In this document: positions 1,892 through 61,653 of the stretch, piece after piece
Layout of the letters: the number at the start of each line of letters is the position of its first letter
Numbering within the stretch: the stretch's first letter is position 1
From: Isurus oxyrinchus
Lineage: Eukaryota
Reading direction: 5' to 3'
Assembly: GCA_026770705.1 (NCBI GenBank)
Contig: JANJGN010000150.1
Coordinates: 124,001-188,000 of the forward strand
Length of the DNA stretch: 64,000 nucleotides
The notes under the pieces: generated by a model
What the model was told of the DNA's origin: nothing
Databases searched by the model: none
What the model saw: the letters and a program-made list of their open reading frames with translations, nothing else
Made by a program: the position numbers and the translations under genes

Positions 1892-1935
<44 letters not shown>

Positions 1936-7906: not shown

Positions 7907-7991
7907 AGGGAGGAGCACAGGAAGAGGTCATTCAGCCCAAGCAGAGCGTGTGGGCAGTTCCTCCCCAGGCGAGCAGTCGGACAGGTCCTGG
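7907..7991 (+). other. Gene A 5'UTR exon (85-nt module)
   Basis: Ends at strong donor GG|GTAAGT; same module lies ~400-450 nt upstream of the leader exon in genes B and C. Confidence 0.6.
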
Positions 7992-8424
7992 GTAAGTAAC
8001 GGAACGATTGGAATTCACTTCCACCACCAACACCGTCCTTTGTTGATGTTGTGACTTTATAAAGACAGATTCCAATGATTGATGCCTTTGAAAGATTTCT
8101 ACTGATTATTGAGATCTGGGTGTGAGGCTCAAGTCAGTTGTACAGAACATCTTTCTTGCTCAAGGGATGAGGAAAATGGGATGCCCTGAGCTGGTGAAAG
8201 GTGCTATAGAAATGCAAGCCCTTCATTGTTTTTCATTCTTAAAGCCTTTTAACTCTCTGCAGAACACCTATCATCCCACAGGGAATCAAATTAGTCTTTG
8301 AAGTCATTGTCTAAAAGGAGTTCTGATCTCTCGAGATCTGTTGGTCAAGAGGTGAGGTCTCATTAACTCCTTTCTCTTTCAGAGTTTGAGAGTGAGAAGT
8401 GGATGGAATATCTGGGAGTGGACA

Positions 8425-8464
8425 ATGATCGGGAAATCTTACTTCATCCTGTCACTTCTCCAAG
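8425..8464 (+). CDS. Gene A leader exon (MIGKSYFILSLLQ)
   Basis: ATG 8425, phase-1 donor CAAG|GTAATA; joins V exon to give signal peptide MIGKSYFILSLLQVGLS-QEW. Confidence 0.85.
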
Positions 8465-11400
8465 GTAATATCATCATCAGATTTAATGTTAATAGTCTCT
8501 GTAAAGAATCATTCTTATTGAGCTGTGATTGGGAACTGATTCAGCAGTGAGCCAGTGTACAAACTCAGACCAAGTCCCATTCACCCATCACCCCTGTGCT
8601 CACTGATATACACTGACTCCCTGTCTGACAGCAGAATTGGAAGTGATCAGAGATCTCAGAGAGTTGTAGGGACTGGAGGACGTTACAAAGTTCAGCAGAA
8701 TTGTAGCAGCGAGAGCAGGATCTTAAAATTCAGGTGCTGTCAGACGTTGGTCAGTGAGCGATGGGGAGTGATGGGTTGAGTAGAGAAGCAAAGATAAAAA
8801 CTGGGGGATGAAGTCTATCCTGCTGCGAGGTCTCCGATAGCAATGGCCTGAAATTAGTGTCCTTTGCTGCCTTTATTCAAAATTGCACATGAAGACAACA
8901 CAGCAGCTCCTAGAATAGACAGGCTGTTCAGTGTCACACTTCCTGTCCATTCTCACCATGCTAGATACTTCAATAAGGGAGCAAGATAACTGAAAGAGAG
9001 AAGGAAGGTAAAGCTGTCTGTGTGTAAAGCTTTCAAATATTCTGAGATATCATGAGTGTCTCTGATCTGCTGCAGAGTTTAAATTTCACAGAATCTGAAC
9101 ACTTTGCAGCTCAGAGAGAGACCATTGCCTCACTGCCTGAAAGGCCGGTGGAAGCAGATTCAACAGGAACTTTCAGAAGGGGAACTGGATAAATACTTGA
9201 AGGGAAATTTGCAGGGATGTGCGAAAGGTGCTGGAGAGGAATTGGGAAAGAGCCAGCACATGCACGATGGGTCAAATGAGCTCCTCCTGTGTTGTATCAT
9301 TCAACAATCAGACAATTTAAGACCCTTGTCAGCAAAACTTCAGAATCCTGCTGAATCACAGATGTTTCTGAAGGACAGGGAACAAGAGGTTTCTGGTAGC
9401 AGCGTTTCATGTGGGGCCCAGTTCAGTTTGAACAAATAAACAACACCATCTTTGAAAGTCATGAACCCACCACTGCGGCACCTCCGACACATGCAGAGCT
9501 CAGGCTAGAGGCACTTTGTTAGTGTGTTTCACAGTGTCTGCTGGAGTAGGGTCAGTGCTGAGCTTGGGGACAAGTCAGTCTACAATGCTGCATCGGAATC
9601 AACAATACAAAAATATGGGGTTTGGATCAGAAATAATCCCTTAGACAATGAGGATCCAAAGAGATTCCTCAGACAGTGAGGATCCAAAGAGATTCCTTAG
9701 ACAATGAGGGTCCAAAGTGATTCCTTAGACAATGAAGATACAAAGTGCACCAATCAGATTGAACCAGATTAGCTAATCAGCTGTGTTGAAGAGCAGACAG
9801 GAATGTTAGGCTAATTAGTGATTCATGACGGTGATAATGGGGGGAGTTCTGAGGGCTCCTAATCCATTGTCCTGTCTTGTAAATCAGCACTGAATGGATC
9901 TCAATGGGTGGGTCTCGTAGACACTGTTTTGGGTGGAAGACTGGCTTCACTAAGGGGAAGCGGTAGCAGAGAGGTATTGTCACTGGGCTAGTATTCCAGA
10001 GGCCCAGGGTGATGCTCAGGGGCCCTGGGTATGAATCCCATCAAAGCAGATGAATGGGATTAAAAAGCCTGGTTCACTGATCCCCTTCAGGGAAGGAAAT
10101 CTCCACCCTTACCGAGTCTGGCCTACATGTCACTCCAAACCCACAGCAATACAATTGATTCTTAAATGCCTCTGATGGACATGGGATGGGTAATAAATGC
10201 TGGGCACATCCCATGAACGGATAATTTGAAAAACACATGACTTGGAGACACTGTGTTGGGTGGAAGACTGGCTTCACTAAACAGGGTCCTGAGGACCATG
10301 AGCCAATGTAGAATGAACTTGTCCACTCCTGGGTCCAGGATTCTCTTCCATCCATTGTGAAACCTTGGGGAGATCCCTGTGTGTCCTGTAGATGGTCCAC
10401 ACTGCAGCCACTGTGCCCCAGTGATGGAAGGGGTGGATATCGAGTCTAGTGGATCTACAAACCATCCAGAGTTAAATATTGATATTTCTCTCCCCAGTTG
10501 GACTGTCACAAGAGTGGAAAGGTGACACACCACGAGAGGTGACAGCGCAGGAAGATTCGTGTGTACAGATTCCATGTCATTACAGTTATCCATCACATTT
10601 GGAAAGCCAACCACGAGTCGGAGTCTGGTTTAATAATGAGAATCAGATTCCTGGATCTCCCATTGCCTTTCACTCCAAGGATCACAGTCACGAGTTACCA
10701 CGGTTCCACCATCGGACCCGGCTGTCTGGAGACCTGAAAGATGGCGACTGTTCCCTGATTATAAACAACATCAGACGGGAAGATGCAGGACCTTATTTCT
10801 TCAGGATAGAATTTGACAGCAGTAATAGTTACAACTACTATCCTGTAACCCAGCTTCAGGTTTCTGGTAAGTGCTGTGTTATAATTACTCAACAATTCAC
10901 ATTCAACACTCAATGGGAATTAACACAAACTGTGACGTTTACATATTAACACAAAACACAGCTTATTATAACACACTGTCTGATTCTCAATAACCTGCTG
11001 ATAGCTTCCAGTTCAGTCCTAAAGCAACCTCTAATACTCACTTTAATATCAATGATTAAATGTATTGACTGTGTCCATCAAAGTTATCAGGTTATCCACT
11101 CTCATCGATCTCTCTAATCCTGTTTAAAATAATTTCCTGATCATTGTAACCTCTCAGTTCTGATATCATCCTTGCAAAGGTGCTTTCTCTTGTGGGACTG
11201 TGGTTTCTATTTGAACTGATGCTTCACGTTATATTTCTCTAAAAGGATCCATTCTCCGTCTGTTAGATTTCACAGATAAACCCACGATATTCCCTGCTGA
11301 AATTATTGCAGGAAAGCGTGTGGATGTAAGCTGCACCTTCAACACAACGTGCAATGGAACAGCAGCACCTGTCTTAACCTGGGACACTCCCACTGACGTA

Positions 11401-14400
11401 CCTGGATCAGTCTCAAACACTGTAACTCAGCATGGTGTCACTCTGACCTATACTTCTGTTCTGACCCTGATCCCATCACTCAAACACCACAGACACAATC
11501 TCAGCTGCAGAGTGAGATATCCATCTGTTTCATCGGAGCAGACCCTCGTACTAACTGTACAATGTAAGTATGGACATCCTTCATTATACATTCGCTGGAA
11601 CAGTCTATATTGTGCACAGCAGGATCCCATAGAAAGGTATTCTGATGAGAACCAGATCATCTGTAGTTTAGGGAAAAACACTGACCAGAAAACAGTTAAT
11701 GACAGTTTCTGAACATTAACACTGGAGCTTTTTTTTCCAGCCAAGAAGCTGATAGAGCAGAGCATCATTCACAATATACTAACCCCCTGACAGTGCAGCA
11801 CTCCCTCAGTACTGACCGCCTGACAGTGCAGCACTCCCTCAGTACTGACCGCCTGACAGTGCAGCACTCCCTCAGTACTGATCCTCCAACAGTGCAGCAA
11901 TCCCTCAGTACTGACCCTCCAACAGTACAGAACTCCCTCAGCACTGACCCTCTGACAGTGTAGCACTCCCTCAGTACTGACCCTCTGACAGTGCAGCACT
12001 CCCTCAGTACTGACCTGCTGAAATTGCAGCTCTCCCTCAGTACTGACCCTCTGACATTGCAGCACTCCCTCAGTACTGACCCTCTGACAGTGCAGCACTG
12101 CCTCAGTACTGACCCTCCAATAATGAAACAATCCCTCAGTACTGACTCTCCGACAGTGCAGCACTCCTTCACTGCTAACCCTCCAACTCTGCAGTGCTCC
12201 CTCAGGACTGAAAATCCAACATTTCATATCTCCCTCCTGACTGACCCTCTGAAAATACAACAGATCCTCGGTCGAGTCCTTCAAACAGTGCTGCACTTCC
12301 ACAGTACTGAATCTCCCCCCCACCCACAGTGCAGCACTTCCACAGTACTGAACCTCTGACAGTGCAGCACTCCCTCAGTACTGACCCTCCCACCTGCAGC
12401 ACTCCCTCAGTACTGACCCTCCCACATGCAGCACTCCCTCAGTACTGACCCTCCCACATGCAGCATTCCCTCAGTACTGACCCTCCCACATGCAGCACTC
12501 ACTCAGTACTGACCCTCCCACAGTGCAGCACTCCCTCAGTACTGACCATCCCACATGCAGCACTCACTCAGTACTGACCCTCCCACAGTGCAGCATTCCC
12601 TCAGTACTGACCCTCCCACATGCAGCACTCACTCAGTACTGATCCTCCCACAGTGCAGCACTCCCTCAGTACTGACCCTCCCACATGCAGCACTCACTCA
12701 GTACTGACCCTCCCACAGTGCAGCACTCCCTCAGTACTGACCCTCCCACATGCAGCACTCCCTCAGTACTGACCCTTTGACAGTGCTGCACTACCTCACT
12801 ATTGGCTTTAAACTAAATAGTGTGTGGGGCGAATGTTTCTGGAGAGGGTATATGTACAGTTACAAACCAAAAGGATTTATTAGCATTGCAGGATAGCTGT
12901 TTTGGCAATGATACCCAGTGTGTGACAGGAAGGGACACAGTGTCCAAACATAAAAATACATCAGCAAATAGTGTCAGAGGGGGGGAAATGATAAAAAGAC
13001 AAAATTAATGGCTCTTTACTTAAATGCACAATGTATTTGGAATGCTGACCTTTATTTCAAAGGGAATGGAGTATAAAAATAGGGAAGTCTTGCTAAAACT
13101 TTACAAGGCACTAGTTAGACCACACCTAGAATACTGTGAGCAGTTTTGGTTCCCTTATCTAAGGAAAGATGTACTGGCATTGGAGGCAGTCCAGAGAAGG
13201 TTCACTAGGTTGATCCCAGTAATGGAGGGATTTTCATATGAGGAGAGGTTGAGTAGGATGGGCCTGTACTCATTGGAGTTTAGGAGAATGAGAGCTGACC
13301 TTATTGAAACATATAAGATTCTTAGGGCGCTTGACAGGGTAGATGCTGACAGGTTGTTTCCCCCTGTGGGAGAGTCTAGGACCAGAGGGCATAATTTCAG
13401 AGTAAGGGGTCACCCATTTAAGACAGAGATGAGGAGTTTCTTCTCTCAGAGGGTAGTGAATGTGTGGAATTCTTTACTGCAGAGAGCTGCAGAGGCTGGG
13501 TCATTAATTATATTCAAGGCTGAGAGACACAGTTTTTTAATCAGTCAGGGAATCAAAGGCTATGGGGAAGAGGCAGGAAAGTGAAGTTGAGGATTGTCAG
13601 ATCAGCCATGGTGTCATTGAATGGCGGAGCAGAGTTGATTGGCCGAATGGCCTCCTTCTGCTCTGACGTCTTGTGGTCTTATGGTCTTATCACCCTCCAA
13701 CAGTGCAGAGCTCCCTAATTACTGACCCTCCGACAGTGCAGCACTCCCTCAGTACTGACCCTCTGACAGTGCAGCACTCACTCAGTACTGACCCTCCGAC
13801 AGTGCAGCACTCCCTCAGTACTGACCCTCCAACAGTGCAGAGCTCCCTAATTACTGACCCTCCAACAGTGCAGCACTCCCTCAGTACTGACCCTCCGACA
13901 GTGCAGCATTCCCTAAGTACTGACCCTCCGAGAGTGCAGCACTCCCTAAGTACTGACCCTCCAACAGTGCAGCACTGCCTCAATACTGACCCTCCAACAG
14001 TGCAGCACTGCGTCAATACTGACCCTCCAACAGTGCAGCACTCCCTCAGTGCTGACCCTCCGACAGTGCAGCACTCCCTCACTACTGACCCTCCGTCAGA
14101 GCAGAGCTCCTAATTACTGACCCTCCAACAGTGCAGCACTCCCTCAGTACTGACCCTCCAACAGTGCAGCACTCCCTCACTACTGACCCTCTGACCGTGC
14201 AGCACTCCCTAAATACTGACACTCTGACAGTGCAGCACTCCCTCAGTATTGACCCTCCGACAGTGCAGAGCTCCCTCAGTATTGACCCTCCGACAGTGCA
14301 GAGCTCCCTAATTACTGACCCACCGACAGTGCAGCACTCTTTCAGTTCTGACCCTCCGACAGTGCAACACTACCTCAGTACTGACCATCCAACAGTGCAG

Positions 14401-15798
14401 AGCTCCCTAATTACTGACCCTCCGACAGTGCAGCACTCCCTCAGTACTGACCCTCCGACAGTGCAGCACTCCCTCAGTATTGATCCTCCGACAGAGCAAC
14501 ACTACCTCAGTACTGTCCCACCGACAGTGCAGCACTCCCTCAGTACTGATCCTCCAACAGTGCAACTCTCCCTCAGTACTGTCCCACCGACAGTGCAGCT
14601 CTCCCTCAGTACTGACCCTCTGACAGTGCAGAACTCCCTCAGTACTGATCCTCCGACAGTGCAACACTCCCTCAGTACTGTCCCACTGACAGTGTAGCAC
14701 TCCCTCAGTACTGATCCTCCGACAGTTCAACACTCCCTCAGTACTGTCCCACCGACAGTGCAGCTCTCCCTCAGTACTGACCCTCCGACAGTGCAGCACT
14801 CCCTCAGTACTGATCCTCCGACAGTGCAACACTCCCTCAGTACTGTCCCACTGACAGTGTAGCACTCCCTCAGTACTGATCCTCTGACAGTTCAACACTC
14901 CCTCAGTACTGTCCCACCGACAGTGCAGCTCTCCCTCAATACTGACCCTCCAACAGTGCACCACTCCATCAGTACTGAACCTTCAACAGTGCAGCACTCC
15001 CTCAGTACTGATCCTCCAACAGTGCAGCACTCCATCAGTACTGATTCTCCGACAGTGAAGTCCTCGCTCAGTACTGACTATGCGGCAGTGAAGCTTTCAC
15101 AGTACCCACCCACCATCAGTACAGCAGGTCCTCAGTACTCACCCTCCAACAGGGCAGCACTCCCTCAGTACTGACCCTCCAACAGTGCAGCACTCCCTCA
15201 GTACTGAACTGAAGAGTCTGCCTGAATTATGTGCTTTGTGGTGAAGGATTGATATTACACCTTTAACATTGTCAGGGTCTCTGAAAGTGCTTCACAGTCA
15301 ATGTAAGTAACTGATCTTTATTTGTTTTTAGATGCACCACAGAATCTCTCAATTACTTTTCATGATATGATTAACGCTTCATCGATCAATATAATTGAGG
15401 GGAATTCTGCAGTGATAATCTGCTCTGTCGAGAGCTTCCCAGCTTCTAACCTGACGTGGCGACATCTTAATGTCCCAATGAACAGAACAAGTTCCAACAA
15501 TGAGCTGTGGTTGGTGATTCCTCACGTTACATCCAGAGACACTGGAGACTATCAGTGTGTGGCAGAGAATGAACATGGAGCAGTGGAGGGGTTCATAACC
15601 ATCACTGTAGAACGTGAGTTAACACAAATTGCAATAACACTCCTCTCACATGCAGACGCACACACACACACATAGACATACACATGCACACACACTCACT
15701 CATGAACAGATGTATACAAACAGGCACACGCACACATGCGCAAACACATACACACACACACACGCACAAACAAACACACTCACATGTGCAGAAACACG

Positions 15799-15843
<45 letters not shown>

Positions 15844-18800
15844 ACACACACACACATGTGTGAGGTTCACTCTCCTCTCTCAGGGCTGCACTGGAGTCTC
15901 GGTGTCAGCCCTGAATCTGTGTTGAAGGAAGGTAAACTCCAGATCAACAAGACCCTGAATTGGATGAGCAACCTCCTGAACAGTGAATTGTAGATTTACC
16001 CCTCAGTGCTCCATCAATCAAATACAATTCATTGCCTGTCAAGCCCTTGGCGAATTCCTGAGGATGTGAATGGAACTTTCTTTCATTCTAGATTGACAGC
16101 ACCTCAACTGGTGGGGGAATGCAACTGCAGTGTGACAGTTTACATAGGCAGTGTCCATTATAAATGTGACAGAGGAACTTATTCTGAGGAAAGGTGCCTG
16201 GAAATGCATTCAGACATCAGATACAAAGAGATGATACATGGAGTCTTGCTGTGCACTGTGCTTGCTCACTCTAAAATCTTTATATGTTTATAGGCGCACC
16301 ACAGAATCTCTCATTTACTTCGCTTGAAATGATTAATGCTTCATCGATCAATATAATTGAGGGGAATTCTGCAGTGATAATCTGCTCTGTCGAGAGCTTC
16401 CCAGCTTCTAACCTGACGTGGCGACATCTTAATGTCCCAATGAACAGAACAAGTTCCAACAATGAGCTGTGGTTGGTGATTCCTCACGTTACATCCAGGG
16501 ACACTGGAGACTATCAGTGTGTGGCAGAGAATGAACATGGAGCAGTGGAGGGGTTCATAACCATCACTGTGGAACATTAGTTACACAGAATTCAACATTC
16601 TGTTTTTATTAGCTCATGGGATGTGGGTAGTGTTGACAAGACCAGAAATCATTGCCCATCTGTAACTGCCCCTTGAGAAGGTGGTGGTGAGCTGCCTTCT
16701 TTAACCACTGCAGTCCATGTGGTGTACGCACACCCACAGTGCTGTTAGGGTGGGAGTTCCAGGATTTTGACCCAACGACGGTGAAGGAATGGCCGATATA
16801 GTTCCAAGTCCCAGGGCAGACCACCACCTCATGTTCACCTCCAAGTCACACACCACACTGACTAGGAACTGTCTCGGTGGAAGAGGTTAAGGGTTTGGAA
16901 GGTGCTGTCGAAGGAGCCTTTGTGAGTTGCTGCAGTGCATCTTGTAGATGGTGCACACTGCTGCCACTGTGTGCCAGTGGTGGAGGGTATGAATGTTTAT
17001 GCTGGTGGATGGGCTGTCGATCAAACAAGCTGCTCCTGGATGGTGTCGAGCTTCTTGAGTGTTGTTGGAGCTGCACTCATCCAGCCAAGTGGAGATTATT
17101 CCATCAGACTCCTGACTTGTGCCTTGTCGATGGTGGACAGGCTTTGGGGAGTCAGGAGGTGAGTTATTCACCGCAGAGTTCCCAGCCTCTTACCCGCATT
17201 TGTAGCCACATTATTTCCTGTTGCCGGGCTGTTGCCAGGGCCAATAGCCTTTGCTGTATCCAGTATCATCAGCTGATTCCTGATGTCACGTGGAGTCAAT
17301 CGAATTGTCTGAAAGCTGACATCTGTGATGCTGGGACCCTCTGGAGGAGGCCGAGATGGAGCATCCACTCAGCACTTCTGGCTGAACATGGTTGCCAATG
17401 CTTCAGCCTTGTCGTTTGCACTGATGTGCTGAGCTCCCCCATCATTAAGGATGGGGATATTTGTGGAACATCCTCCTCCTGTTAGATCTTTAATTGTCCA
17501 TCACCATTCATGACTGGATGTGGCAGGACTGCAGAGCTTAGATCTGACCCGTTGGTTGTGGGATCGCTTTGCTCTGTCTATAGCATGTTGTTTCCGCTGT
17601 TTGGTGTGTATGTAGTCCTGTGTGTCACCTCAGCAGCTTGGCACCTCTGTTATATGTGAATCCTCCTTATAGAAACCTGCATGTACATGGATATTATCAA
17701 TAAATATTACATAGATAAATGTTGTTTGTATAGACCTTTCATGCATAGACAATATCACTTCACAAGTTCAGAATTACTACATGTACATAGGGAACCATTC
17801 TCAAACTGTACCGGAGTCATTCATTGGCTGATTTTACAGGGCGAGATTCCAATGAATGGAAAGCAGGATTGCTTGGACCGGGAATCTGTTTGAGTGTTGG
17901 ACTGAGTGGATTCTTCATCTTCAATTGTGTGAGAAAGTAAGTGTGAAGCTTTAATTGGTTGTTTTTGAACATGTTTTCTTCAAACTTCTCTCCTTATAGA
18001 AAGAACTTGCATTTCTATAACACCTTTTAGAATCGAAAACCCTTCACAGCCCCTGAAGAGCTTTGATGTTCACTCATTGTTTAACATCTCATCCAACACT
18101 CAATGTTTCACAATTCAGTCCTGTAACAGGCAGTGTTGACCTGGACCATAAAATACCTTGTGACTTCCTGAGGATGTGAAAGGGGATATATAAATGAAGA
18201 CATTTCTTTTGTTAGTGAATGCAATCTCTTTCCATTTTCAGTGTCTAACTCACTCTCTCTTACCTCCACTAATGCTCTCCTTCTCATTCTCTCTCTCTCT
18301 CATTCACTCTCTCCCCAATCTCCACTAATGCTCTCCTTCTCATTCTCTCTCTCTCTCATTCACTCTCTCCCCAATCTCCACTAATGCTCTCCTTCTCATT
18401 CTCTCTCTCTCTCATTCACTCTCTCTCCAATTTCCACTAATGCTCTACTTCTCATTCTTTCTCTCGTCCTCTTACACAATGTTCAGTATCTCACATTTTT
18501 AAGGAGCGCTGAGCAACATCTGCTCCTTCAGAAGATCCACCTCAACACCTGGAGCAAGCAGTGAATTGAAACTCGCTCACCAACTGCTCAGCTTTACACA
18601 GGAATCACGTCACAGAGTCAGGACACAAAGGGTTAACAGTTTGCTTACAACACAACACTAAGGCCCTACGTTTCAGTGAAAGGGTTTTCACAATTGTTCC
18701 CCAATTCCTCATTTTGTCTCACAGAGACACATCAACCCTTTCTCATTAAATACACAGAGGGAGCAGCACAGGAAGAGGTCATTCAGCCCAGTCAGAGCGT

Positions 18801-20544
18801 GTGGGCAGTTCCTCCCCAGGCGAGCAGTCGGACAGGTACTGGGTAAGTAACGGAACGATTGGAATTCACTTCCACCACCAACACCGTCCTTTGTTGATGT
18901 TGTGACTTTATAAAGACAGATTCCAATGATTGATGCCTTTGAAAGATTTCTATTGATTATTGAGATCTGGGTGTGAGGCTCAGGTCTGTTGTACAGAACA
19001 TCTTTCTGGGTAAATTGTGCAGACAGGTTACACACAGTCTACAATTATATTCCCTCGGGTCTAGAAGATTAAGGAGTGATCTAACTGAGGGGTTCAAAAT
19101 GATTAAACACTCGATAGGGTCGATAGAGAGAAGCTATTCCCATGGGTGGGGGTGGTTGGTGGGGGTCGGGTGGAGTCCAGAACAAGGGGGCTGGAACTTC
19201 AGATTGGAGCCAGGCCGTTCAGGGGTGATGTCAGGAAGCACATCTTCACACAAAGGGGAGTGGAAATCTGGAACTTTCTCCCCAATAATCAAACCCAACA
19301 CCGAATACACATCATGTTGATTGTCACTCTGTCCATTTCCATCTCTATTACAGAAGAGAGGCGAGGGGAAAGCAGGAATCAAAACGAACCACCGTGTTGA
19401 TGAATATCGAGGTCCTGTTTATGAAAACTGTGAGCGTGGTTGGGCTTTGAGGAATCAGGTGAGTCACACACCACAGGATCCCCAGCCTCTCAGCTGCTCC
19501 AGTAGCCTGGTTATTGATATGGCTGCTCCAGTCCTGTATCTGCAATGTTTTATACAGTCACTCCCAAACCCAACCAAACTCACACCCAACACCATTCAGA
19601 ATCAATAATCAAACCCCGTTCAGTATCAATAATCAAACCCCGTTCAGAATCAATAATCAAACCCCGTTCAGTATCAATAATCAAACCCCATTCAGAATCA
19701 ATAATCAAACCCCGATCAGAATCAATAATCAAACCCCGTTCAGAATCAATAATCAAACCCCGTTCAGTATCAATAATCAAACCCCGTTCAGAATCAATAA
19801 TCAAACCCCGTTCAGAATCAATAATCAAACACTGTTCAGAATCAATAATCAAACCCCGTTCAGAATCAATAATCAAACACCGTTCAGAATCAATAATCAA
19901 ACACCGTTCTGTATCAATAATCAAACCCCGTTCAGAATCAATAATCAAAACCCATTCAGTTTCAATAATCAAACCCCGTTCAGTATCAATAATCAAACCC
20001 CGTTCAGAATCAATTATCGAACCCTGTTCAGTTTCAATAATCAAACCCCGTTCAGAATCAATAATCAAACCCCGTTCAGAATCAATTATCAAAACCTGTT
20101 CAGAATCAATAATCAAACTCCGTTCAGAATCAATAATCAAACCCCGTTCAGAATCAATTATCAAAACCTGTTCAGAATCAATAATCAAACTTCGTTCAGA
20201 ATCAATAATCAAACCCCGTTCAGAATCAATAATCAAACCCCGTTCAGAATCAATAATCAAACTCCGTTCACTATCAATAATCAAACCCCGTTCAGTATCA
20301 ATAATCAAACCCTGTTCAGTATCAATAATTAATGTATCTATTGTGGGTGGAATTTTCGATTTGGATCAATAATACTAAACACTGATCACTCTGATTGTCA
20401 CTCTGATCATTTCTGTTTCTATTACAGAAGAAAGATGAGAAGGATCTGGAAATGAAATCTAACCGCGGAGTCAGTCCTGATACAGATGATGATCTTTACG
20501 CAAACTGTGATTTTGCCAAGGATTCTGTTTATGGGAATTTATAA
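8425..20544 (+). CDS. Siglec-like gene A (spliced CDS). Membrane form join(8425-8464,10498-10866,11267-11563,15332-15613,17840-17936,18758-18842,19354-19458,20428-20544), 463 aa; alternative secreted form ends in exon 16294-16580, 424 aa
   Basis: All junctions are AG/GT with compatible phases (1,1,1,1,2,0,0). V domain has Siglec hallmarks (SCVQIPC, DCSL, YFFRIE); C2 domains, TM and a Tyr-motif tail follow. Confidence 0.85.
9954..10245 (+). mobile_element. tRNA-derived SINE with 35-bp flanking duplication
   Basis: tRNA-like head; flanked by AGACACTGTkTTGGGTGGAAGACTGGCTTCACTAA at 9919-9953 and 10246-10280; absent from paralogous introns of B and C. Confidence 0.75.
10498..10866 (+). CDS. Gene A V-set sialic-acid-binding domain exon
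   Basis: 369 nt, ctccccAG|...TCTG|GTAAGT; [28 protein letters not shown] with essential Arg (AGG 10803-10805). Confidence 0.95.
11267..11563 (+). CDS. Gene A C2-set domain 1 exon
   Basis: 297 nt; [10 protein letters not shown]...VSCTFNTTC...LTW...SVLTLIP...LSCRV; extra Cys (TTC) typical of the Siglec V-C2 interdomain bond. Confidence 0.95.
11785..12800 (+). repeat. 33-bp tandem array (CAGTACTGACCCTCCGACAGTGCAGCACTCCCT)n
   Basis: Head-to-tail units without spacers; same family at ~5100-5345, 7440-7530, 23430-23705, 30143-30595, 37105-37335. Confidence 0.95.
13027..13690 (+). mobile_element. CR1-type LINE 3' fragment (RT C-terminus plus 3'UTR)
   Basis: LYKALVRPHLEYC...VQRRFTRLIP...SYEERL...DLIETYKIL...RTRGH...FFSQRVVNVWNSL. 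Confidence 0.92.
13690..15210 (+). repeat. 33-bp tandem array
   Basis: About 45 units of the same repeat. Confidence 0.95.
15332..15613 (+). CDS. Gene A C2/I-set domain 2 exon
   Basis: 282 nt; YAPQNL...ICSVESFPASNLTW...DTGDYQCVAENEHG; tttttAG| acceptor, |GTGAGT donor. Confidence 0.93.
16294..16580 (+). CDS. Gene A duplicated C2 exon, donor lost, ends in in-frame TAG (terminal exon of a putative secreted isoform)
   Basis: Near-identical to 15332-15613; intact acceptor tttatAG|; end reads GAA CAT TAG instead of GAA C|GTGAG. Confidence 0.75.
16600..17650 (-). mobile_element. CR1/L2-group LINE fragment (antisense)
   Basis: Decayed AQVRS.MEYSPLGWMSAAPTTLKKLDTIQ motif and tail, shared with 32090-32410 and 43130-44190. 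Confidence 0.8.
17699..17704 (+). terminator. Candidate intronic poly(A) signal for the secreted isoform
   Basis: First AATAAA I find after the 16580 stop, and it lies before the TM exon. Confidence 0.35.
17840..17936 (+). CDS. Gene A transmembrane exon (RRDSNEWKAGLLGPGICLSVGLSGFFIFNCVRK)
   Basis: 97 nt, ttttacAG|...GAGAAA|GTAAGT; same length, phases and homology as gene C TM exon 47934-48030. Confidence 0.85.
18265..18460 (+). repeat. ~56-bp CT-rich tandem repeat, about 3.5 copies
   Basis: CTCCACTAATGCTCTCCTTCTCATTCTCTC... repeated. Confidence 0.85.
18758..18842 (+). CDS. Gene A cytoplasmic exon 1 (KGSSTGRGHSAQSERVGSSSPGEQSDRYW), a copy of the 5'UTR-exon module
   Basis: 85 nt, open, phase 2 to 0, exactly bridging TM exon and next exon; acacAG| acceptor, |GTAAGT donor. 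Confidence 0.6.
19354..19458 (+). CDS. Gene A cytoplasmic exon 2 (KRGEGKAGIKTNHRVDEYRGPVYENCERGWALRNQ)
   Basis: 105 nt, ctattacAG|...CAG|GTGAGT; VYEN motif. Confidence 0.75.
19590..20330 (+). repeat. 24-bp minisatellite (TTCAGAATCAATAATCAAACCCCG)n, about 30 copies
   Basis: 8-aa periodic ORFs on both strands. Confidence 0.97.
20428..20544 (+). CDS. Gene A last coding exon (KKDEKDLEMKSNRGVSPDTDDDLYANCDFAKDSVYGNL*)
   Basis: ctattacAG| acceptor; LYANC and C-terminal ITIM-consensus SVYGNL; TAA 20542-20544; AATAAA at 21316 and 21484. Confidence 0.78.
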   Translation, partial: KKDEKDLEMKSNRGVSPDTDDDLYANCDFAKDSVYGNL

Positions 20545-21875: not shown

Positions 21876-21879
21876 ATGA

Positions 21880-22270: not shown

Positions 22271-22274
22271 AACA

Positions 22275-23110: not shown

Positions 23111-25271
23111 ATGCTCCTAATGTACTCGAGCCTGGTACACAGGAACTGGGGAAGGCCAATTCAGCCCCTTTAGCCTTTTACACAGGAACAGGAGGAGGCC
23201 CATTCAGCCCCTCGAGCCTATAACACAGGAACAGGAGGAGGCCCATTCAGCCCACTCAAGCCTGTTACACAGGAACAGGAGGAGGCCCATTCAGCCCAAG
23301 CAGAGCGTGTGGGCAGTTCCTGTCCAGACGAGCAGTCGGACAGGTCCCGGGTAAGTAATGGATCGATTGGAAATCACGGGGGAAGTTCTGAGGGCTCCTA
23401 ATCCATTGTCCTGTCTTCTAAATCAGCACCTTAATACTGACCCTTCAACAGTGCGGTACTCCCTCAGTACTGATCCTCCAACAGTGCAGCACTCCCTGAT
23501 TAATGTCCCTCTGACAGTGCAGCACTCCCACAGTACTGACCCTCCAACAGTGCAGCACTCCCTGATAAATGTCCCTCTGACAGTGCAGCACTCCCTCAGT
23601 ACTGACCCTCAAACAGTGGAGATCTCCCTCAGTACTGACCTTACAATAGTGCAACACTCGCTCAGTAATGACCATCCGACAGTGCAGCACTCCCTCAGTA
23701 CTGACACTGGGGAGTTTCAGTCTACTCTGTGGGGCAGACGTCCCATGAATGGGGTCTTGAATCCCACAACGTTCTGACCCCCTGAATTTGGCTGTGAAAC
23801 CCACTGACCCACAGGAGAAACTCCTGGTCAATGACTGTCCTGTCCACCTCTGAGCAGAAATATCACCACAGGGTCAGGACACAAACGGTTAACAGTTCAC
23901 CAACATCTCAAAACAAGAGCTGCTCTGTCACTTTGATCCAACTTCCTCATTTTGTCTCACAGAGACACATCAACCCTTTCTCATTAAATACACAGAGGGA
24001 GCAGCACAGGAAGAGGTCATTCAGCTCAAGCAGAGCGTGTGGGCAGTTCCTCCCCAGGCGAGCAGTCGGACAGGTCCTGGGTAAGTAACGGAACGATTGG
24101 AATTCACTTCCACCACCAACACCGTCCTTTGTTGTTGTTGTGACTTTATAAAGACAGATTCCAATGATTGATGCCTTTGAAAGATTTTTACTGATAATTG
24201 AGATCTGGTGTGAGGCTCAAGTCTGTTATACAGAACATCTTTCTAGCTCAAGGGATGAGGGAAGTGCAGAGACATGAGATTTGGGATGCCCTGAGGTAGT
24301 GAAAGGTGCTATGGAAATGCAAATCCTTCATTGTTTGTCTTTCTTACAGCCTTGTAACTCTCTGCAGAGCACCTATCATCCCACAGAGAATCAAATTATT
24401 CTGTGAAGACATTGTCTAAAAGCAGTTCTGATCTCTCGAGAGCTGTCGGACAAGAGGTGAGGTCTCATTAACTCCTTTCTCTTTCACAGCTTGAGAGTGA
24501 GATGTGGATGGAATATCTGGGAGTGGACGATGATCGGGAAATCTACTTCCTCTTGTCACTTTCCCAAGGTAATATCATCATCAGCTCAGACAGATTTATG
24601 TTTAACAGTCTTTGTAAAAGATCATTCTTATCTCTTAATCTCTGTAACCTTCTGCAACTCAACCAAACAACGTCCCAGATCTCTGTGTTACTCCAATTCC
24701 GGCCACTTGACCATCCCCCGATTCCCATCACTCCAATACTGGCGGCCGGGCCTACAGCTGCCTGGGGCCTGAGCTCTGGAATTCACTCCCTAAACCTCGG
24801 GGATGGAGGAGCTCAGAGGGTTTCATTTTACTGAGAATCACCACGACCACATCACAGCTGCAGTCAGAATAGACAGAGAGTCCAGCCCTCACACTTCCTG
24901 CACAGTTTCACCATAGCAACCACAATATGGAAATTTTAAAATACTGAAAGTTAAACTGAAGCTCAAACCAGTCAGTGTAGAGAGATGAGATGTTTACACA
25001 GTTTCCCTGTGTATCTTGTAGACACTGTGTTGGGTGGAAGACTGGCTTCACTAAACAGGGTCCTGAGGACCATGAGCCAATGTAGAATGAACTTGTCCAC
25101 TCCTGTGTCCAGGATTCTCTTCCCTCCGTTGTGAAACCTTGGGGGGTTCTTTGTGTGTCCTGTAGATGGTCCACACTGCAGCCACTGTGCCCCAGTGATG
25201 GAGGGGGTGGATATCAAGTCTAGTGGATCTACAAACCTTCCAGAGTTAAATATTGATATTTCTCTCCCCAG

Positions 25272-25647
25272 TTGGACTGTCACAAGAGTGGAAAGGCGAC
25301 ACTCCACGAGAGGTGACAGCGCAGGAAGGTTCGTGTGTACAGATTCCATGTCATTACAGTTATCCAGCACATTTCATAGGGAGATCACGTGTTGGAATCT
25401 GGTTGAAAGGAATAGATGGGAACCCACAGCCTAAATGGTCTATAGCCTTTCATTCCGAGGGTCACAGTCACAGGGATCAAAGATTCCGCCATCGTACCCG
25501 GCTGTCTGGAGACCTGAAAGATGGCGACTGTTCCCTGATTATAAACAAAATCAGACGGGAAGATGCAGGACCTTATTTTTTTCAGAATATAATTTGACAA
25601 CAGGAATAGATACAACTATTATCCTGTAACCCGGCTTCATGTTTCTG
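25272..25647 (+). pseudogene. Gene B V-set exon, disabled at the essential Arg
   Basis: 376 nt; T7 run at 25576-25582 (T6 in gene C paralogs) shifts frame just before AGA; the corrected frame still hits TAA at 25590-25592 (GAA in paralogs). Confidence 0.9.
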
Positions 25648-26506: not shown

Positions 26507-26803
26507 ATTTCACAGATAAACCCACGATATTCCCTGCTGAAATTATTGCAGGAAAGCGTGTGGATGTAAGCTGCACCTTCAACACAACGTGCAATGGAAC
26601 AGCAGCACCTGTCTTAACCTGGGACACTCCCACTGACGTACGTGGATCAGTCTCAAACACTGTAACTCAGCATGGTGTCACTCTGACCTATACTTCTGTT
26701 CTGACCCTGATCCCATCACTCAAACACCACGGACACACTCTCAGCTGCAGAGTGAGATATCCATCTGTTTCATCGGAGCGGACCCTCGTACTGACTGTGC
26801 AAT
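26507..26803 (+). pseudogene. Gene B C2-set exon 1 (open frame)
   Basis: 297 nt, nearly identical to 11267-11563 and 50786-51082. Confidence 0.9.
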
Positions 26804-27129: not shown

Positions 27130-27277
27130 ATCTTAATGTCCCAAAATTCAGAACAAGTTCCAACAATGAGCTGTGGTTGGTGATTCCTCACGTTACATCC
27201 AGGGACATGGACACTATCAATGTGTTCAGAGAATGAACATGGAGCAGTGGAGGGGTTCATAACCATCACTGTGGAAC
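27130..27277 (+). pseudogene. Gene B C2 exon 2 remnant (3' half only)
   Basis: Homologous to the 3' half of 15332-15613 with indels; 5' half replaced by unrelated sequence ~26948-27129. Confidence 0.85.
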
Positions 27278-28952
27278 GTGAGTGTACACAGACTTCAACA
27301 TCTCTCTCAGATTCGAACACTACACAAACGCCCTCAAACATACAGACCTAAATAGACACGTGTAGACACACATATATGACCACACACAAAGACACACTCA
27401 CAAACAAACACACTAGCACAAGACTCCCTCATGGGTTACCTGACCTCCCTCAGTACTGCACTGGAGAGTGGGCTGCATTCTGGGATTTGTGTTCCCATTC
27501 GTATTTATGGAAGAATATGGAAATTACTCGTACAAACACTCAGATGCATAGAGGCACTCGTAGATACTATCTGCTTCTCCAACTCTCTCTCTCTCCCTTT
27601 AAGGAGCTACCTGAAACCTAACCCTTTGACGAAGAACTAGTCCCAACTCCTCCTTATCTGATTCTGTGATTTCTTTTGTGTATCTGAGAGTAAAAGAGAG
27701 GTGAAGAGGTTTAGTACGAGAATTCTTGCTGGTGAAAAGCTTACATCTTGTTCTCATTATTTCCGTGCACATATTTCCCAGTATGTCCAATGCCCCTGTT
27801 TATAATGATGACTGCCTATGTAAACGTCACGCTGTAGTTACAGCCTCCCACCAGTGGTGGCATTGTAGCACTTAATCCTTGTGTTTCCCAGCTTTTCAAG
27901 CAACTCCACTTCCCAGTTTGCTACACAAGCTGTGAGTTCATCAGAATTAAATTATTTCTCAAACAGTAGATTTGATAACTCATTTTATTGAAAACTTCTT
28001 CAGTGCCTCCCTGAAGGGTTTACACTCTCCGGGAAGCAGGAATAGGCTGGATGTTGGGGAGTTCATCTTTTCCCAGAGAGTAGGGATCCTCAGGAATGTG
28101 CTGTCAGTGGGTGTGGTGGTTGCTGATTCTCTGTCACCTTCAAGAGGGATCTGGAGTGGTTACTGACTGGGGGAGAGATCATGGAAGCGGAGAATGATAC
28201 AGCACAGGAGGAGGCCATTCAGCCCATTGAGCCTGTGCCAGGTCTTTCAATGTTCTATCCAATCAGATCCACTAACCACCACTCCACCTTGCCCCCATCT
28301 TCCTCCTTCAAGTGTTTATCCAATTTCCCTTTTGAAAGTTCCTATTGAATCTGCTTCTACCGCCCTTTCAGGCAGCACCTTCCAGATCACAACAACTCAC
28401 TCTGTCAAAACAAATTCTCCTCATCTCCCCCTCCGGTTCATCAATCTGTTTCCCTCTGGTTACCGACCCTCCTGCCCCTTAAATACATCAATACTGTTCA
28501 CCTCAACCACTCCCAGTGGGAGCGAGTTCCACATTCTCCCCTCTCTCTGGGTAAAGATTGGAACTGTTTATTAAGCGGGGGGTGTAAGTCCATGGGGGAG
28601 TCCATCTCGATCCTGCCCGATTCGCACACGCGTCCGAGATGGATTTCCACCCTGCACTAAACGTTTCCAGAATTTTCTACAGCACAATCCTGTACACAGC
28701 GATGGAGAGAAACACTGGACAGGGAGTCCAACAGCACAATGATCCATTCTCACCAATGTTCCACGCTAAGGGGAAAGTTCCGATTGTCCACTCTTAGAGT
28801 GTTTCCAATGAAAACATTCATTCCACATTGAATCCCAGTGGATGGGTCAATATTACAGCAAATGTTGCAGTGATATGAAGCTTGATTGTTCAGCCAGAGT
28901 GAGAGATTGAAAGCGGAGAGTCAGTGATGATTTCTTTCTGTGTGTTCTCTAG

Positions 28953-38770: not shown

Positions 38771-38844
38771 ACCCACTCCCCAGTTTCACATCTCCCTCAA
38801 ACACAGAAAAACTGGGTTAACACTGACCCTCCTCCCAGAGCCAG

Positions 38845-40484: not shown

Positions 40485-40520
<36 letters not shown>

Positions 40521-42395
40521 ACAGATATCAGAGGTAAAATAATTATGGAGCCCAATTAAAAAAAATTCAAAGAGTTATTATACTGCAGCATAGTTTGTGA
40601 AGTTTGAAGCTGTTTTAAATTAGTTGGTTTGCTGTAGAATCCTGTATTTCATCTGGCTCAGACTTGCACATTATTGAAGACACTCTGTTAGCTTCAGACA
40701 GACAGAGAGAAAGAAGGTGCGAGAGAGAGAGAGAGAGAGACAGGGATAGAGGGAGAAATCATTTCTGTTCTTTTCTAGCAGGGTTTTTAGATGACTGCCA
40801 TATTTCTTTTTCCTCCTCCTTTCTCTTATATCTGCTTGGCAGAACCATTTGTTAAACTCCTGTCTGTATATTCCTGAAGGGAATTCAATCAGCATGTTTT
40901 GCATTCATTGTTAAAGGCCAAGTATTCACGTTTTTTATCTTTGCATCTCCAAAACATTTGATGCATTTCAAGATATAAATCAACAGGAGATGCGGGTATT
41001 GCATCCTCCACAGGGGGTTTTGAATGGCTGATGATTATCCGCTTGGTGAGCAGTTCCCACTGTTTTGATAGAACTACAGCTGTTCAAAGTCCAGCACTTT
41101 GCATTTTAATGCCTTCCTTTTAAGAGTGTCCCTGTTTGCAGTGAACCCTGACACACCCCAGGCGTGACCTTCCATGCAACAGGTCTGCAGTGCAATTCAT
41201 TTGAACCTTTCCAGAGAAGTGATCAACTTCACAGTATCAGCAATCAGGTGACTTGTGTCAGCCATTTTTGATCTGTGTACAATCTTGTATTTCTTTGCAA
41301 AACAGGTCACTTTTAGACAGTTCAATACATCTTTGGTCAGTTAGTTAAGTTGTAGGAAGCTCTAAATCACAGTTTGCTGTCAGGATATTGTCTTTGGGTG
41401 TGTGTTTGTGTGTGTGTAAGTGAGTGGCTGTGTGTGTGTGAGAATGTGAGTGTGTTTGTGTCTGTCTNNNNNNNNNNNNNNNNNNNNNNNNNNNNNNNNN
41501 NNNNNNNNNNNNNNNNNNNNNNNNNNNNNNNNNNNNNNNNNNNNNNNNNNNNNNNNNNNNNNNNNNNNNNNNNNNNNNNNNNNNNNNNNNNNNNNNNNNN
41601 NNNNNNNNNNNNNNNNNNNNNNNNTGTGTCTGTCTGTAAGTGTGTGAGCGTGTGTATGTGTGTTTGTGTATGTGTGTGAGCGTGTGTATGTGTGTTTGTG
41701 TATGTGTGTGCGTGTCTGTGTGTGTGTGAGTGAGTGTGTGTGTCTGTGTATGTGAGTATGTGGGTATGGGTGTGTCTGTGTATGTGTCTGTGAGTGTGTG
41801 TCTGTGTGTGTGTTTCTGAGAGAGAGAGCAAGTGATTCACAGAGTGAAACCTCCTTGAGTCTGGCCACTGTGTTTAACATTTAAGCCACACAGACAGGAT
41901 GTGGTTAAAAGGTGAAACCACAAGGAGTGAGTGACTTTCTCAGTGACTGTCTCTCTGTGGGTTTCCTGTGGGTTTCTGTGAACTGCCTGTGGTTTTAAAA
42001 AGAATCTTCCAACCCCACATGCACGGCATCAAATAAGGAATTGGAAGCTGCAGCTCAGAGAGTAACTAGTCCCCCGAGAATTCACAGCCCCTCAAACACA
42101 GATTAACAGCATTAATCCTGACCGTCAGCCCACTCACTCATTGCCTCTTGTCTCAGACACTAGAAAGTGGAAGTTAAGGCCGGATTTTCACTCCCGGGTC
42201 GGGGGACACAGAGACGGCAGGAAAAAATAACAAAATAGGTCTCGAGCACACAGAGCTCCAAGGGAAGGGTCGTGCTGCAGCTAAGGTGTGAGACATGGTA
42301 CACTCCCCGGATGCAGCATTGAGGCTTGTATGTCTACACAGCTGATGTAGGTGCACATGGAACACATGTGAATGAGCACTGTGATGCACACACAC
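38845..42395 (-). repeat. Inverted segmental duplication, right arm
   Basis: Position 1 pairs with 42395; mirrored ORF translations in the track (e.g. 2455..2679- vs 39808..40032+). Confidence 0.95.
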
Positions 42396-45379: not shown

Positions 45380-45628
45380 TCAGTTTTTCTGGAACCTGAT
45401 CTGTGCGTATTCTGTGTCCTCGCTCCTGTGCACAGTCCTGTCACCGCCGGGCAGCTTTGAAAAGTTGATGTTGGCGTAGAGAAGCTCGTCGGTATTGTCG
45501 GAGTTCCCATGTCCAACATCGCCTCCCACTGGACCTTCAGAGAGACCCCGGGGAGCTGGGGTCTCCCCCTCACTAGTTGTGTCTCTGGTTGTGTTCCGGG
45601 GCTCAGTAATCAGCACGTTCTGTTCATC
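45380..45628 (-). CDS. Gene C last exon with ITIM (ELLYANINF) and ITSM (DTEYAQIRF)
   Basis: Long polypyrimidine acceptor ctttttctctgtAG|GAT; motif pair and spacing resemble CD33-related Siglec tails. Confidence 0.92.
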   Translation of the reverse strand, partial: DEQNVLITEPRNTTRDTTSEGETPAPRGLSEGPVGGDVGHGNSDNTDELLYANINFSKLPGGDRTVHRSEDTEYAQIRFQKN

Positions 45629-60600: not shown

Positions 60601-61119
60601 GTGTTGTCTTCATGGGAAATTCTGACTAAAATCAGCAAAAGACACAAAATTTCAGGGCATTTTTATCCGAGTCCTAACATCAGGATAGACTTCATCCCCC
60701 AGTTGTATTCCTGATTCTCTATTCAGCCGATCGCTCCCCTGTCAATGGCTGACCTACACTGACTCTCAGTCCAGTAATGACTCAAATTTCAAATTCTCAT
60801 CATTGATTTATTACCCCAACATCCACCCCACTCTATAATCTGAATCTCTGTAACCTCCTCCAACCCTAAAACCCTCTGAGATCTCTGCACTCCTCAAATT
60901 CTGCTGTCAGACAGGGAGTCAGTGTATATCAGTGAGCACAGGGGTGATGGGTGAATGGGACTTGGTGTGAGTTTGTACACTGCCTCACTGCTGAATCAGT
61001 TCCCAATCACAGCTCAATAAGAATGATCTTTTACAAAGACTATTCACCATAAATCTGTCCAAGCTGACAATGATATTACCTTGGAGAAGTGACAGGAGGA
61101 AGTAAGATTTCCCGATCAT
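45380..61119 (-). CDS. Siglec-like gene C, CD33-like inhibitory receptor: complement join(61119-61080,[56533-56159],52179-51811,51082-50786,48030-47934,47056-46975,45628-45380); 377 aa with V2 only, 502 aa with both V exons
   Basis: All exons open, AG/GT bounded and phase-compatible; ITIM LLYANI and ITSM TEYAQI. Confidence 0.9.
46080..46760 (+). repeat. 33-bp tandem array in the last intron of gene C
   Basis: Same unit. Confidence 0.95.
46975..47056 (-). CDS. Gene C cytoplasmic exon 1 ([28 protein letters not shown])
   Basis: 82 nt, phase 2 to 0, ttattgcAG|...CAG|GTACAG. Confidence 0.8.
47934..48030 (-). CDS. Gene C TM exon ([33 protein letters not shown])
   Basis: 97 nt, tttttacAG|...AA|GTAAGT; uncharged hydrophobic helix. 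Confidence 0.9.
49087..50632. repeat. (TG)n-rich microsatellite region with N-masked blocks
   Basis: Degenerate TG repeats flank every N run. Confidence 0.85.
50786..51082 (-). CDS. Gene C C2-set exon
   Basis: 297 nt, near-identical to genes A and B C2-1. Confidence 0.95.
51811..52179 (-). CDS. Gene C V-set exon 2, Arg-containing (YFFRIE)
   Basis: 369 nt open exon; closest to the gene A V exon. Confidence 0.95.
52232..53065 (+). mobile_element. CR1 LINE 3' fragment between the two V exons of gene C
   Basis: [12 protein letters not shown]...GDLIETY...[26 protein letters not shown]. Confidence 0.88.
53130..53530 (+). mobile_element. Non-LTR retrotransposon 3' end (RTE-X-like), decayed
   Basis: [12 protein letters not shown] / LRTGQ.PC...[10 protein letters not shown] (frameshifted Cys motif) followed by AATAAA. 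Confidence 0.5.
53920..54920 (+). repeat. Degenerate ~37-bp G-rich tandem repeat (GTTACAGAGATAGGGAGGGTTGTAGGGGCTGGAGGAG)
   Basis: Repeated units. Confidence 0.85.
54950..55900 (-). mobile_element. L2 LINE RT fragment
   Basis: [19 protein letters not shown]...QLYL...[21 protein letters not shown]. Confidence 0.88.
56159..56533 (-). CDS. Gene C V-set exon 1, Arg-less (YFFGIE)
   Basis: 375 nt open exon with intact splice sites; GGA at 56222-56220 where V2 has AGA. Confidence 0.85.
56938..58390 (+). mobile_element. Two adjacent LTR-like elements (~56938-57865 and ~57870-58390)
   Basis: TGT...ACA termini, internal AATAAA; the first matches 44194-45089. Confidence 0.65.
58520..59210 (+). mobile_element. 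Ty3/Gypsy gag remnant
   Basis: FPSFNW...[13 protein letters not shown]...AVGNEGL; zinc-knuckle CGRCG...KCPA...CKACGRKGH; stops and frameshifts. Confidence 0.75.
61080..61119 (-). CDS. Gene C leader exon ([13 protein letters not shown])
   Basis: Homolog of 8425-8464, intact phase-1 donor. Confidence 0.85.
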
Positions 61120-61569
61120 TGTCCACTCCCAGTTTTTCCATCCACTTCTCACTATCAAGCTGTGAAAGAGAAAGGAGATAATGAGACCTCACCTCTTGTC
61201 CGACAGCTCTCGAGAGATCAGAACTGCATTTAGACACTGTCTTCACAGACTAATTTGATTCTCTGTGGGATGATAGGTGCTCTGCAGAGAACTACTAGGC
61301 TTTAAGAAAGTAAAACAATGAAGGATTTGCATTTCTATAGCACCTTTCAGCACCTCAGGGCATCCCAAAACTCATGTTTCTGCACTTACCTCATCCCTTG
61401 AGCTAGAAAGATGTTCTGTACAACAGACTTGAGTCTCACACCCAGATCTCAATAATCAGTAGAAATCTTTCAAAGGCATCAATCATTGGAATCTGTCTTT
61501 ATAAAGTCACAACATCAACAAAGGACGGTGTTGGTGGTGGAAGTGAATTCCAATCGTTCCGTTACTTAC

Positions 61570-61653
61570 CCAGGACCTGTCCGACTGCTCGCCTGGGGAG
61601 GAACTGCCCACACGCTCTGCTTGGGCTGAATGACCTCTTCCTTGCTGCTCGCT
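61570..61653 (-). other. Gene C 5'UTR exon module
   Basis: 84-nt copy of 7907-7991 with GTAAGT donor. Confidence 0.6.

Follow-up and report, generated by a model that had tools for sequence, protein, structure and literature searches.

The question raised by a stretch of 64,000 nucleotides from Isurus oxyrinchus (assembly GCA_026770705.1, contig JANJGN010000150.1, positions 124,001 to 188,000 of the forward strand; here called the window, and numbered from its first letter) was whether it holds a paired-receptor system of the Siglec type, with inhibitory, activating and secreted receptors built on one extracellular scaffold, as an initial annotation of the sequence had proposed. The cluster was real and well formed, and was made up of an intact inhibitory gene (gene C), an intact gene with a cytoplasmic tail of YxN motifs (gene A) and a dead activating copy (gene B). 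The window is probably part of a large elasmobranch Siglec gene family, and its three genes are probably paralogues from one duplicated unit, composed of an exon resembling cytoplasmic exon 1, a leader exon, a V exon and a C2-1 exon. It holds no matched pair in the style of Siglec-5/14, because the V exons were the most diverged part of the genes and the activating copy was dead.

Siglec identity and shared scaffold

Open reading frames (ORFs) in six frames and self-comparison gave an inventory of four Siglec-like V exons, three C2-1 exons and two and a half C2-2 exons, and no non-Siglec genes were found in the 64-kb window. Genes A and B, on the plus strand, and gene C, on the minus strand, pointed their 3' ends toward each other, in agreement with the tail-to-tail arrangement described initially. 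Three loci with near-identical leader and C2-1 exons, related V exons and different ends had also been described correctly: between loci, the C2-1 exons were 98-99% identical and the V exons 81-91% (DNA), and the ends differed. The signal peptide was encoded by a 40-nt exon (MIGKSYF[I/L]LSLLQ, phase 1), near-identical in the three genes, with its ATG at 8425 (gene A), 24530 (gene B) and 61119 on the minus strand (gene C). The four V exons, two on the plus strand (10498-10866, 25272-25647) and two on the minus strand (52179-51811, 56533-56159), were all phase 1-1, with the acceptor ..CCCCAG/TT and the donor ..TCTG/GTAAGT. Splice sites were canonical in genes A and C, except for the donor of one gene A exon (C2-2b, see below), and exon phases fitted throughout; frame continuity was judged from exon length and phase only, and the exons were searched singly.

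These exons are predicted to encode Siglec-type receptors. The V exon matched the Pfam families V-set (E 1e-12) and Ig_CD22 (E 3e-9), and all 17 of its matches above 50 bits among solved structures were Siglecs (E 3.5e-15 to 2.5e-12); Siglec-5, -8, -10, MAG, CD33, Siglec-7 and sialoadhesin matched at E 3.5e-15 to 1.2e-12. Bit scores were 59 for Siglec-5, 54 for MAG, 51 for sialoadhesin, 32 for Siglec-15 and 22 for CD22. The F-strand arginine in YFFRIE, a residue that in Siglecs touches the carboxylate of sialic acid, was present in the V exon of gene A and the second V exon (V2) of gene C and aligned to YFFRVE of Siglec-5; the first V exon (V1) of gene C read YFFGIE. The Siglec cysteine pattern, which in Siglecs serves a B-E disulfide within the sheet and a bond from an additional cysteine to the first C2 domain, was found at the sequence level in the V exons (SCVQIPC ... 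DCSLII) and, as three cysteines, in C2-1 (CTFNTTC ... LSC). Binding of sialylated glycans by the V domains of genes A and C is a predicted property only, by analogy with known Siglecs. Exons C2-1 and C2-2 were rejected as markers of a subfamily, their structure matches being weak (MAG, CD33, nectins) or generic for immunoglobulin domains.

Three genes with different ends

Gene C (minus strand) was intact, in the order leader (61080-61119), V1 (56159-56533), V2 (51811-52179), C2-1 (50786-51082), uncharged transmembrane (TM) exon (47934-48030), cytoplasmic exon 1 (46975-47056) and last coding exon (45380-45628). An uncharged TM segment with an immunoreceptor tyrosine-based inhibitory motif (ITIM) and a switch motif had been claimed for this gene, and both were confirmed, the TM exon at 48030-47934 and the motifs LLYANI (ITIM) and, distally, TEYAQI in the last exon, which ended ..RFQKN followed by a stop. 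The C2-1 exon ended ..CAAG, so that its junction with the TM exon encodes glycine. The same holds for the great white model P0012, a CD33-like protein of the form V-C2-1-TM-ITIM/TEY in which C2-1 is joined straight to a TM exon of the gene C type. Judged from mammalian CD33-related Siglecs, V2 would use its F-strand arginine to bind sialylated ligands, and SHP-type phosphatases would be recruited by the phosphorylated tail.

The two tandem V exons behind one leader differed from the initial description. V1 carried glycine in place of the binding arginine (YFFGIE), and V2 kept the arginine (YFFRIE) and had an extra cysteine (YPSC). The basking shark protein XP_078389734 was of the form V1-V2-TM-ITIM/TEY, with cytoplasmic exon 1 and the same odd V1 loop, and is evidently, from its sequence, the orthologue of gene C; its V1 keeps the arginine, and the loss in gene C is therefore recent. 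In a tree of V domains, V1 paired with the basking shark V1 (100/98) and V2 fell in a starred clade of V domains standing behind another V domain. The extra cysteine was found in 20 of 24 later-position V domains, in 0 of 19 first-position ones and in 5 of 70 single ones. These tree placements and this distribution show the V1-V2 tandem to be a genuine architecture of long standing, rather than an artefact of prediction. The 3.9 kb between the two V exons (52240-56100) consisted mostly of retroelement debris, with an ORF resembling the 3' end of a long interspersed nuclear element (LINE) at about 52300-52930 (plus strand) and a reverse-transcriptase-like ORF at 55240-55940 (minus strand); homology to the other loci ended about 40-60 nt outside each of these V exons.

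Gene B (plus strand) had been described as a receptor with an arginine-bearing TM segment and a short tail. This end stood: the activating-type TM exon (28953-29092) was intact and read SGGEILHVILILGIRAVIFLVAVFITITGVCVWERQTVKGSRQTV followed by a stop, with an arginine within the membrane and a 13-residue tail. The gene as a whole did not, with leader, V and C2-2 exons broken, and gene B is a pseudogene in this assembly, a decayed copy of the activating format. The leader exon (24530-24568) had a 1-nt deletion (one T) and lost the frame from the usual ATG. The V exon (25272-25647, 376 nt) carried a T-run lengthened by one T; with the frame restored, the arginine codon was kept, and a TAA followed the arginine and isoleucine codons. 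The C2-1 exon (26507-26803) was intact, and of C2-2 a remnant was left (27132-27306), with its 5' half lost and an internal frameshift. The format that decayed here would have comprised leader, V, C2-1, arginine-bearing TM and 13-residue tail, and in intact members the membrane arginine would pair with an adaptor chain of the DAP12 or FcR gamma kind that carries an ITAM (an activating, tyrosine-based motif of immunoreceptors), by analogy with mammalian Siglecs.

Read contigs (Logan) were compared over 4,801 letters of the gene B region only, and paralogues were not separable with certainty. Two runs were RNA-like, with exon bins 50-100 times the intron bins, and two were DNA-like. Two joints were found only in the RNA-like runs, which came from two organisms: 25646>26506 (GT..AG), from V to C2-1, and 26801>28951, from C2-1 to the arginine-TM exon. 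Of the junctions predicted initially, these two in the gene B region were recovered from RNA-like contigs. The second joint read ..CAAG/ACAGTGG (VQ-D-SGGEIL), the same junction as in the great white models P0182, P0184 and P0208, and the contig may come from an allele of gene B or from a paralogue. In DNA run X1 both A and G were present at 29036, and at least two versions of the arginine-TM exon therefore exist. By the RNA-like contigs, the arginine-TM format is expressed somewhere in these sharks.

It is quite improbable that gene B itself is a working activating receptor, its lesions being assembly or consensus errors or one null allele. Although its C2-1 and arginine-TM exons were intact, the latter with exon-like depth in the RNA-like runs and in two versions by the A/G dimorphism of run X1, the RNA contigs entering the V exon continued as sequences like the V of gene A or the V2 of gene C, not as that of gene B, and the single RNA-like contig reported over the middle specific to the gene B V exon had a depth of about 43, in the range of intron bins (4 to 176), against thousands over conserved exon parts. 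One V lesion was a T-run length difference, but there were three separate lesions in two exons, one of them a substitution to TAA and not a homopolymer error. The leader was kept in frame by an upstream ATG at 24502, but its deletion was reproduced exactly by a contig of run X1 (24515-24618).

In the same leader region (24502-24568), translation from the upstream ATG (MWMEYLGVDDDREIYFLLSLSQ) ran on into the hydrophobic core, an effect of the 1-nt deletion. Great white model P0012 also began with the peptide of this upstream ATG, but in the other frame, which hints at a wrong start ATG in some RefSeq models of this Siglec family.

Gene A (plus strand) was also intact, in the order leader, V, C2-1, C2-2a, C2-2b, TM, cytoplasmic exon 1, cytoplasmic exon 2 and last exon. 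The signal-peptide exon (8425-8464) read MIGKSYFILSLLQ and ended in phase 1, and was followed by the V exon (10498-10866, 369 nt, phase 1-1, YFFRIE arginine kept), C2-1 (11267-11563), C2-2a (15332-15613, canonical splice sites) and C2-2b (16294-16575, also delimited as 16294-16580), a tandem duplicate of C2-2a. The TM exon (17840-17936) read RDSNEWKAGLLGPGICLSVGLSGFFIFNCVR, ended in phase 2 and had 74% DNA identity to the TM exon of gene C. Cytoplasmic exon 1 (18758-18842) read GSSTGRGHSAQSERVGSSSPGEQSDRYW; cytoplasmic exon 2 (19354-19458, ..DEYRGPVYENCERGWALRNQ) duplicated the start of the last exon in diverged form, and was also present in basking shark models (..GWALRNQKKDEK..). The last coding exon (20428-20544) read KKDEKD..DLYANCDFAKDSVYGNL followed by a stop. 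A TM segment with a tail of three YxN motifs had been claimed, and was found as such: the TM exon was homologous to that of gene C, and the tail carried VYENC, LYANC and SVYGNL-stop (YEN, YAN, YGN) on three exons. These motifs fit the Grb2 SH2 consensus, and the last, SVYGNL, also fits the ITIM consensus. Gene A would thus give a receptor with leader, V, C2-1, one or two C2-2 domains, a TM segment like that of gene C and a three-YxN tail. The intron before the last exon held a 24-bp tandem repeat (19588-20329, about 30 copies, about 91% alike), whose ORFs of 240-275 amino acids were artefacts.

Direct splicing of the TM exon to the last exon was rejected in genes A and C, being out of frame in both, and intermediate exons are therefore needed. 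No cytoplasmic exon common to the two genes was found between TM and last exon by blastn or tblastx, and the cytoplasmic exons of both were placed with the proteins of relatives.

A soluble form of gene A had also been proposed. Exon C2-2b is either a dead, skipped exon or the terminal exon of a secreted form: its donor was AT instead of GT, and its frame ran ..TVEH and stopped one further codon (His) past the exon end. It kept its acceptor and an open frame, was 93% identical to C2-2a in protein, and had its nearest AATAAA at 17699, 1.1 kb downstream and ahead of the TM exon. A secreted receptor ending in this exon, with the locus switching between membrane and soluble products, would agree with all these features but is unlikely, because donor-less exons are usually skipped, the orthologous A-type models retain TM and tail, and the transcript contigs, which covered the gene B region, gave no support. 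The lost donor and the early stop are the basis of the proposed soluble form. Gene A is taken here as a membrane receptor with a YxN tail.

Upstream of gene A, an exon at 7907, with a counterpart at 61653, marks the outer coordinates of the initial annotation. It was rejected as a leader, as it had no ATG and matched the A-type cytoplasmic exon 1, of which it was an orphan copy (7907-7991, plus strand, about 430 nt upstream of the gene A leader), matched by tblastn with the tails of great white P0018 and Chiloscyllium P0007. It read GRSTGRGHSAQAERVGSSSPGEQSDRSW, kept an AG acceptor and a GTAAGT donor, and is possibly a 5' non-coding exon. Further orphan copies were located upstream of the gene B leader (23996-24080, plus strand) and, with a 1-nt deletion, of the gene C leader (61570-61653, minus strand). 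An 85-nt exon with splice sites was therefore found about 430 nt upstream of each leader and again as a coding cytoplasmic exon inside gene A (18758-18842), the regions 7859-8156 and 18710-19007 being 96% identical over 298 bp. Either a 5' exon module came to be used as coding sequence, or a coding exon came to be used as a 5' module.

Pairing, mosaic identity and the inverted arrangement

The proposal of a paired-receptor system was not supported in this window. The activating gene B was decayed, and the V domains were 79-87% identical (protein), with no two genes sharing a ligand-binding domain. Both exon types, the ITIM tail and the arginine-TM, were intact in the window, the second within a gene with broken leader and V exons.

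Identity between loci was patchy. The introns around the V exon were 94-97.5% identical (84-92% over 61 bp in pairs with the V2 of gene C), and the differences within the V exons were concentrated in two places, the CC' region and the stretch ahead of the G strand. In these variable patches, which were chosen after seeing the data, synonymous difference was about 0.5, compared with 0.08-0.17 outside them. Positive selection on the V exon was rejected, the ratio of nonsynonymous to synonymous difference (pN/pS) being lower than 1 both overall and in the variable patches. The excess divergence was also present at synonymous sites, and it therefore reflects old variation and not simple diversifying selection. 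The V patches look like old specificity-determining patches in a scaffold homogenised by conversion or recent duplication.

The mammalian cluster had been cited initially as one shaped by inversion and gene conversion; in the window, inverted duplication and patchy homogenisation were seen. Genes A and B were also flanked by the arms of an inverted repeat of 3.6 kb, the right arm (38844-42395) being 94-97% identical to positions 1-3651; through this repeat the A-B segment could become inverted with respect to gene C. An assembly gap interrupted the same (TG/CA)n array in both arms, the gap at 41468-41624 in the intergenic arm being mirrored by that at 779-931 in the other arm. Of the nine N runs in the window, seven were located in imperfect (TG)n arrays inside the C2-1-to-TM intron of gene C (49088-50632; six at 49088-50372 and one at 50424-50632). 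No exon adjoined a gap and no reading frame crossed one.

Other repeats were found in the introns and between the genes. Arrays of a 33-bp satellite (5080-5340, 11770-12800, 13690-15210, 23430-23710, 30140-30600, 46030-46800 and 61930-64000) were present in several Siglec introns and at the window end, with long ORFs in every frame that were repeat artefacts. Fragments of LINE-type ORFs (..LVRPHLEYC.. 3' ends and reverse-transcriptase-like) were found at 13024-13584, 29438-29908 (minus strand) and 32037-33740 (minus strand), in introns and between genes B and C.

Several points weigh against this reading of the window. The transcript contigs spoke only for the gene B region, where contigs of paralogues also landed, and none spoke for genes A or C. 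The contig joining C2-1 to the arginine-TM exon read ..CAAG/ACAG, one base different from the ..CAAT of gene B. The lesions of the gene B V exon rest on the assembly, and one of them, in a T homopolymer, may be an error; the Logan contigs over the spot came from paralogues. The best DNA run (X1) may be the source of the assembly itself. The arginine-to-glycine change in V1 of gene C was a single-base change read from the assembly alone, and further exons may be hidden in the gaps of the C2-1-to-TM intron of this gene. Ligand, sialic-acid binding, phosphatase recruitment, adaptor pairing and cell type were all assigned by analogy.

With an inhibitory gene still intact beside a dead activating copy, the window is a clear case of birth-and-death turnover, and it adds a fresh loss of the binding arginine (V1) and a mosaic of homogenised scaffold and old hypervariable patches.

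Relatives, origin of the family and comparison with known systems

A full HMMER search gave 1237 relatives, the closest being shark and ray RefSeq models named Siglec-8, -10, -12, -13, -14, CD33-like and MAG-like. Automated annotation had been expected to stop at "MAG-like/CD22-like", which was not the case: NCBI uses the names Siglec-5, -6, -7, -8, -10, -11, -12, -13, -14, -15 and CD33-like in about 20 elasmobranch species. All three formats of TM and tail recurred in several shark species, and the inhibitory and YxN formats also in rays. The arginine-TM cassette was present in models of both catsharks and the great white. Many sharks had the ITIM/TEY tail, which also occurred as a variant in ray; the YxN tail was found in sharks, rays and one turtle model, the A-type tails including basking shark P0198/P0199 and Chiloscyllium P0007. 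A literature search on this elasmobranch Siglec family found no paper describing it. A fish-Siglec survey, which covered bony fish only, reported CD33-related Siglecs as absent from fish genomes (PMC7226832), and the whale shark genome paper merely listed Siglecs among the gene families dating to the jawed-vertebrate ancestor (PMC8455134). The family is a new lineage of a known kind of system, with its genes already in RefSeq under borrowed mammalian names.

Two origins were considered. The chances are close to even, if slightly short of it, that the family goes back to a MAG/CD22-like ancestor and expanded specifically in the elasmobranch lineage, its formats convergent with those of mammalian CD33-related Siglecs and not orthologous to them. 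In the V tree, where one elephant protein served as mammalian reference, the shark clade was starred (97/98) and the elasmobranch family formed its own near-starred clade (94/95); the elephant CD33-related V domains grouped with frog ones (99/94), apart from the shark family and nearer, with weak support, to elasmobranch MAG-like proteins, and the deep nodes were open. However, the approximately unbiased (AU) test did not reject a grouping of the family and tetrapod CD33-related V domains in one clade (p = 0.377). The nearest nameable matches outside elasmobranchs, with multi-match proteins set aside, were bony-fish MAG-like, CD22-like and sialoadhesin-like proteins, and a single human Siglec-5 V domain scored below them. 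For the tails, pairwise BLASTP against elephant CD33-like found no similarity, but a profile comparison, biased by sets picked by motif, aligned ITIM and C-terminal TEY with mammalian-type CD33-related tails (90.8%, E 1e-6, 33 columns), and the layout of the gene C tail, a proximal ITIM and a distal TEY motif, was shared with elephant CD33-like tails.

It is somewhat doubtful that mammalian CD33-related Siglecs have their true counterpart in the shark family, the ITIM-plus-TEY tails of the two being homologous. On this reading the family would diversify ligand specificity in an unusual way, through ancient CC' and G-strand patches, with a synonymous difference of about 0.5, that are retained or shuffled in a scaffold held 94-99% identical by gene conversion. 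If true, this fast-evolving immune-checkpoint family and its inhibitory/activating duality would date to the jawed-vertebrate ancestor and would have been lost in bony fish. Siglec V domains, CD33-type ITIM/TEY tails, arginine-anchored activating forms and tandem V heads in one large family of sharks and rays point to one of two histories for glycan-sensing checkpoint receptors of opposing signal: an origin far earlier than has been supposed, or two separate inventions.

The family shares with mammalian CD33-related Siglecs (CD33, Siglec-5, -7, -9) the F-strand arginine in YFFR[IVLM]E, the CxxxPC...DCSL cysteines, C2-set domains on phase 1-1 exons, a proximal ITIM (L-x-Y-A-x-[ILV]-x-F) with TEY-x-x-I a few residues from the C-terminus, and clustered, fast-duplicating genes with pseudogenes and arginine-less members. 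The details of TM and tail exons differ, however, the shark family often has a tandem V-V head, and the V tree leaves orthology open.

Gene C resembles human Siglec-12 (Siglec-XII), in which the first of two tandem V-set domains has lost the essential arginine, and many shark models are named "Siglec-12" by NCBI because of this layout. The likeness is one of architecture only; the shark second-position V domain has an extra cysteine (YPSC) and the basking shark V1 keeps the arginine. The tail of gene A resembles those of CD22 and Siglec-10 in its Grb2-SH2-type motifs (YEN, YAN, YGN), and a softshell turtle "CD22-like/Siglec-10" model ends similarly (..VYENM..IVYSNV); this likeness is at the motif level only, BLASTP having given no significant alignment.

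With the mammalian pairs Siglec-5/14 and -11/16, the shark cluster has in common inhibitory and arginine-TM short-tail formats on a shared extracellular scaffold in one cluster, homogenisation between neighbours, and an activating member that is often a pseudogene or a null allele. The part homogenised is different: the mammalian pairs keep the V domain, and the first C2 domain, near-identical by gene conversion, whereas in the shark it is C2-1 and the introns that are homogenised (94-99%).

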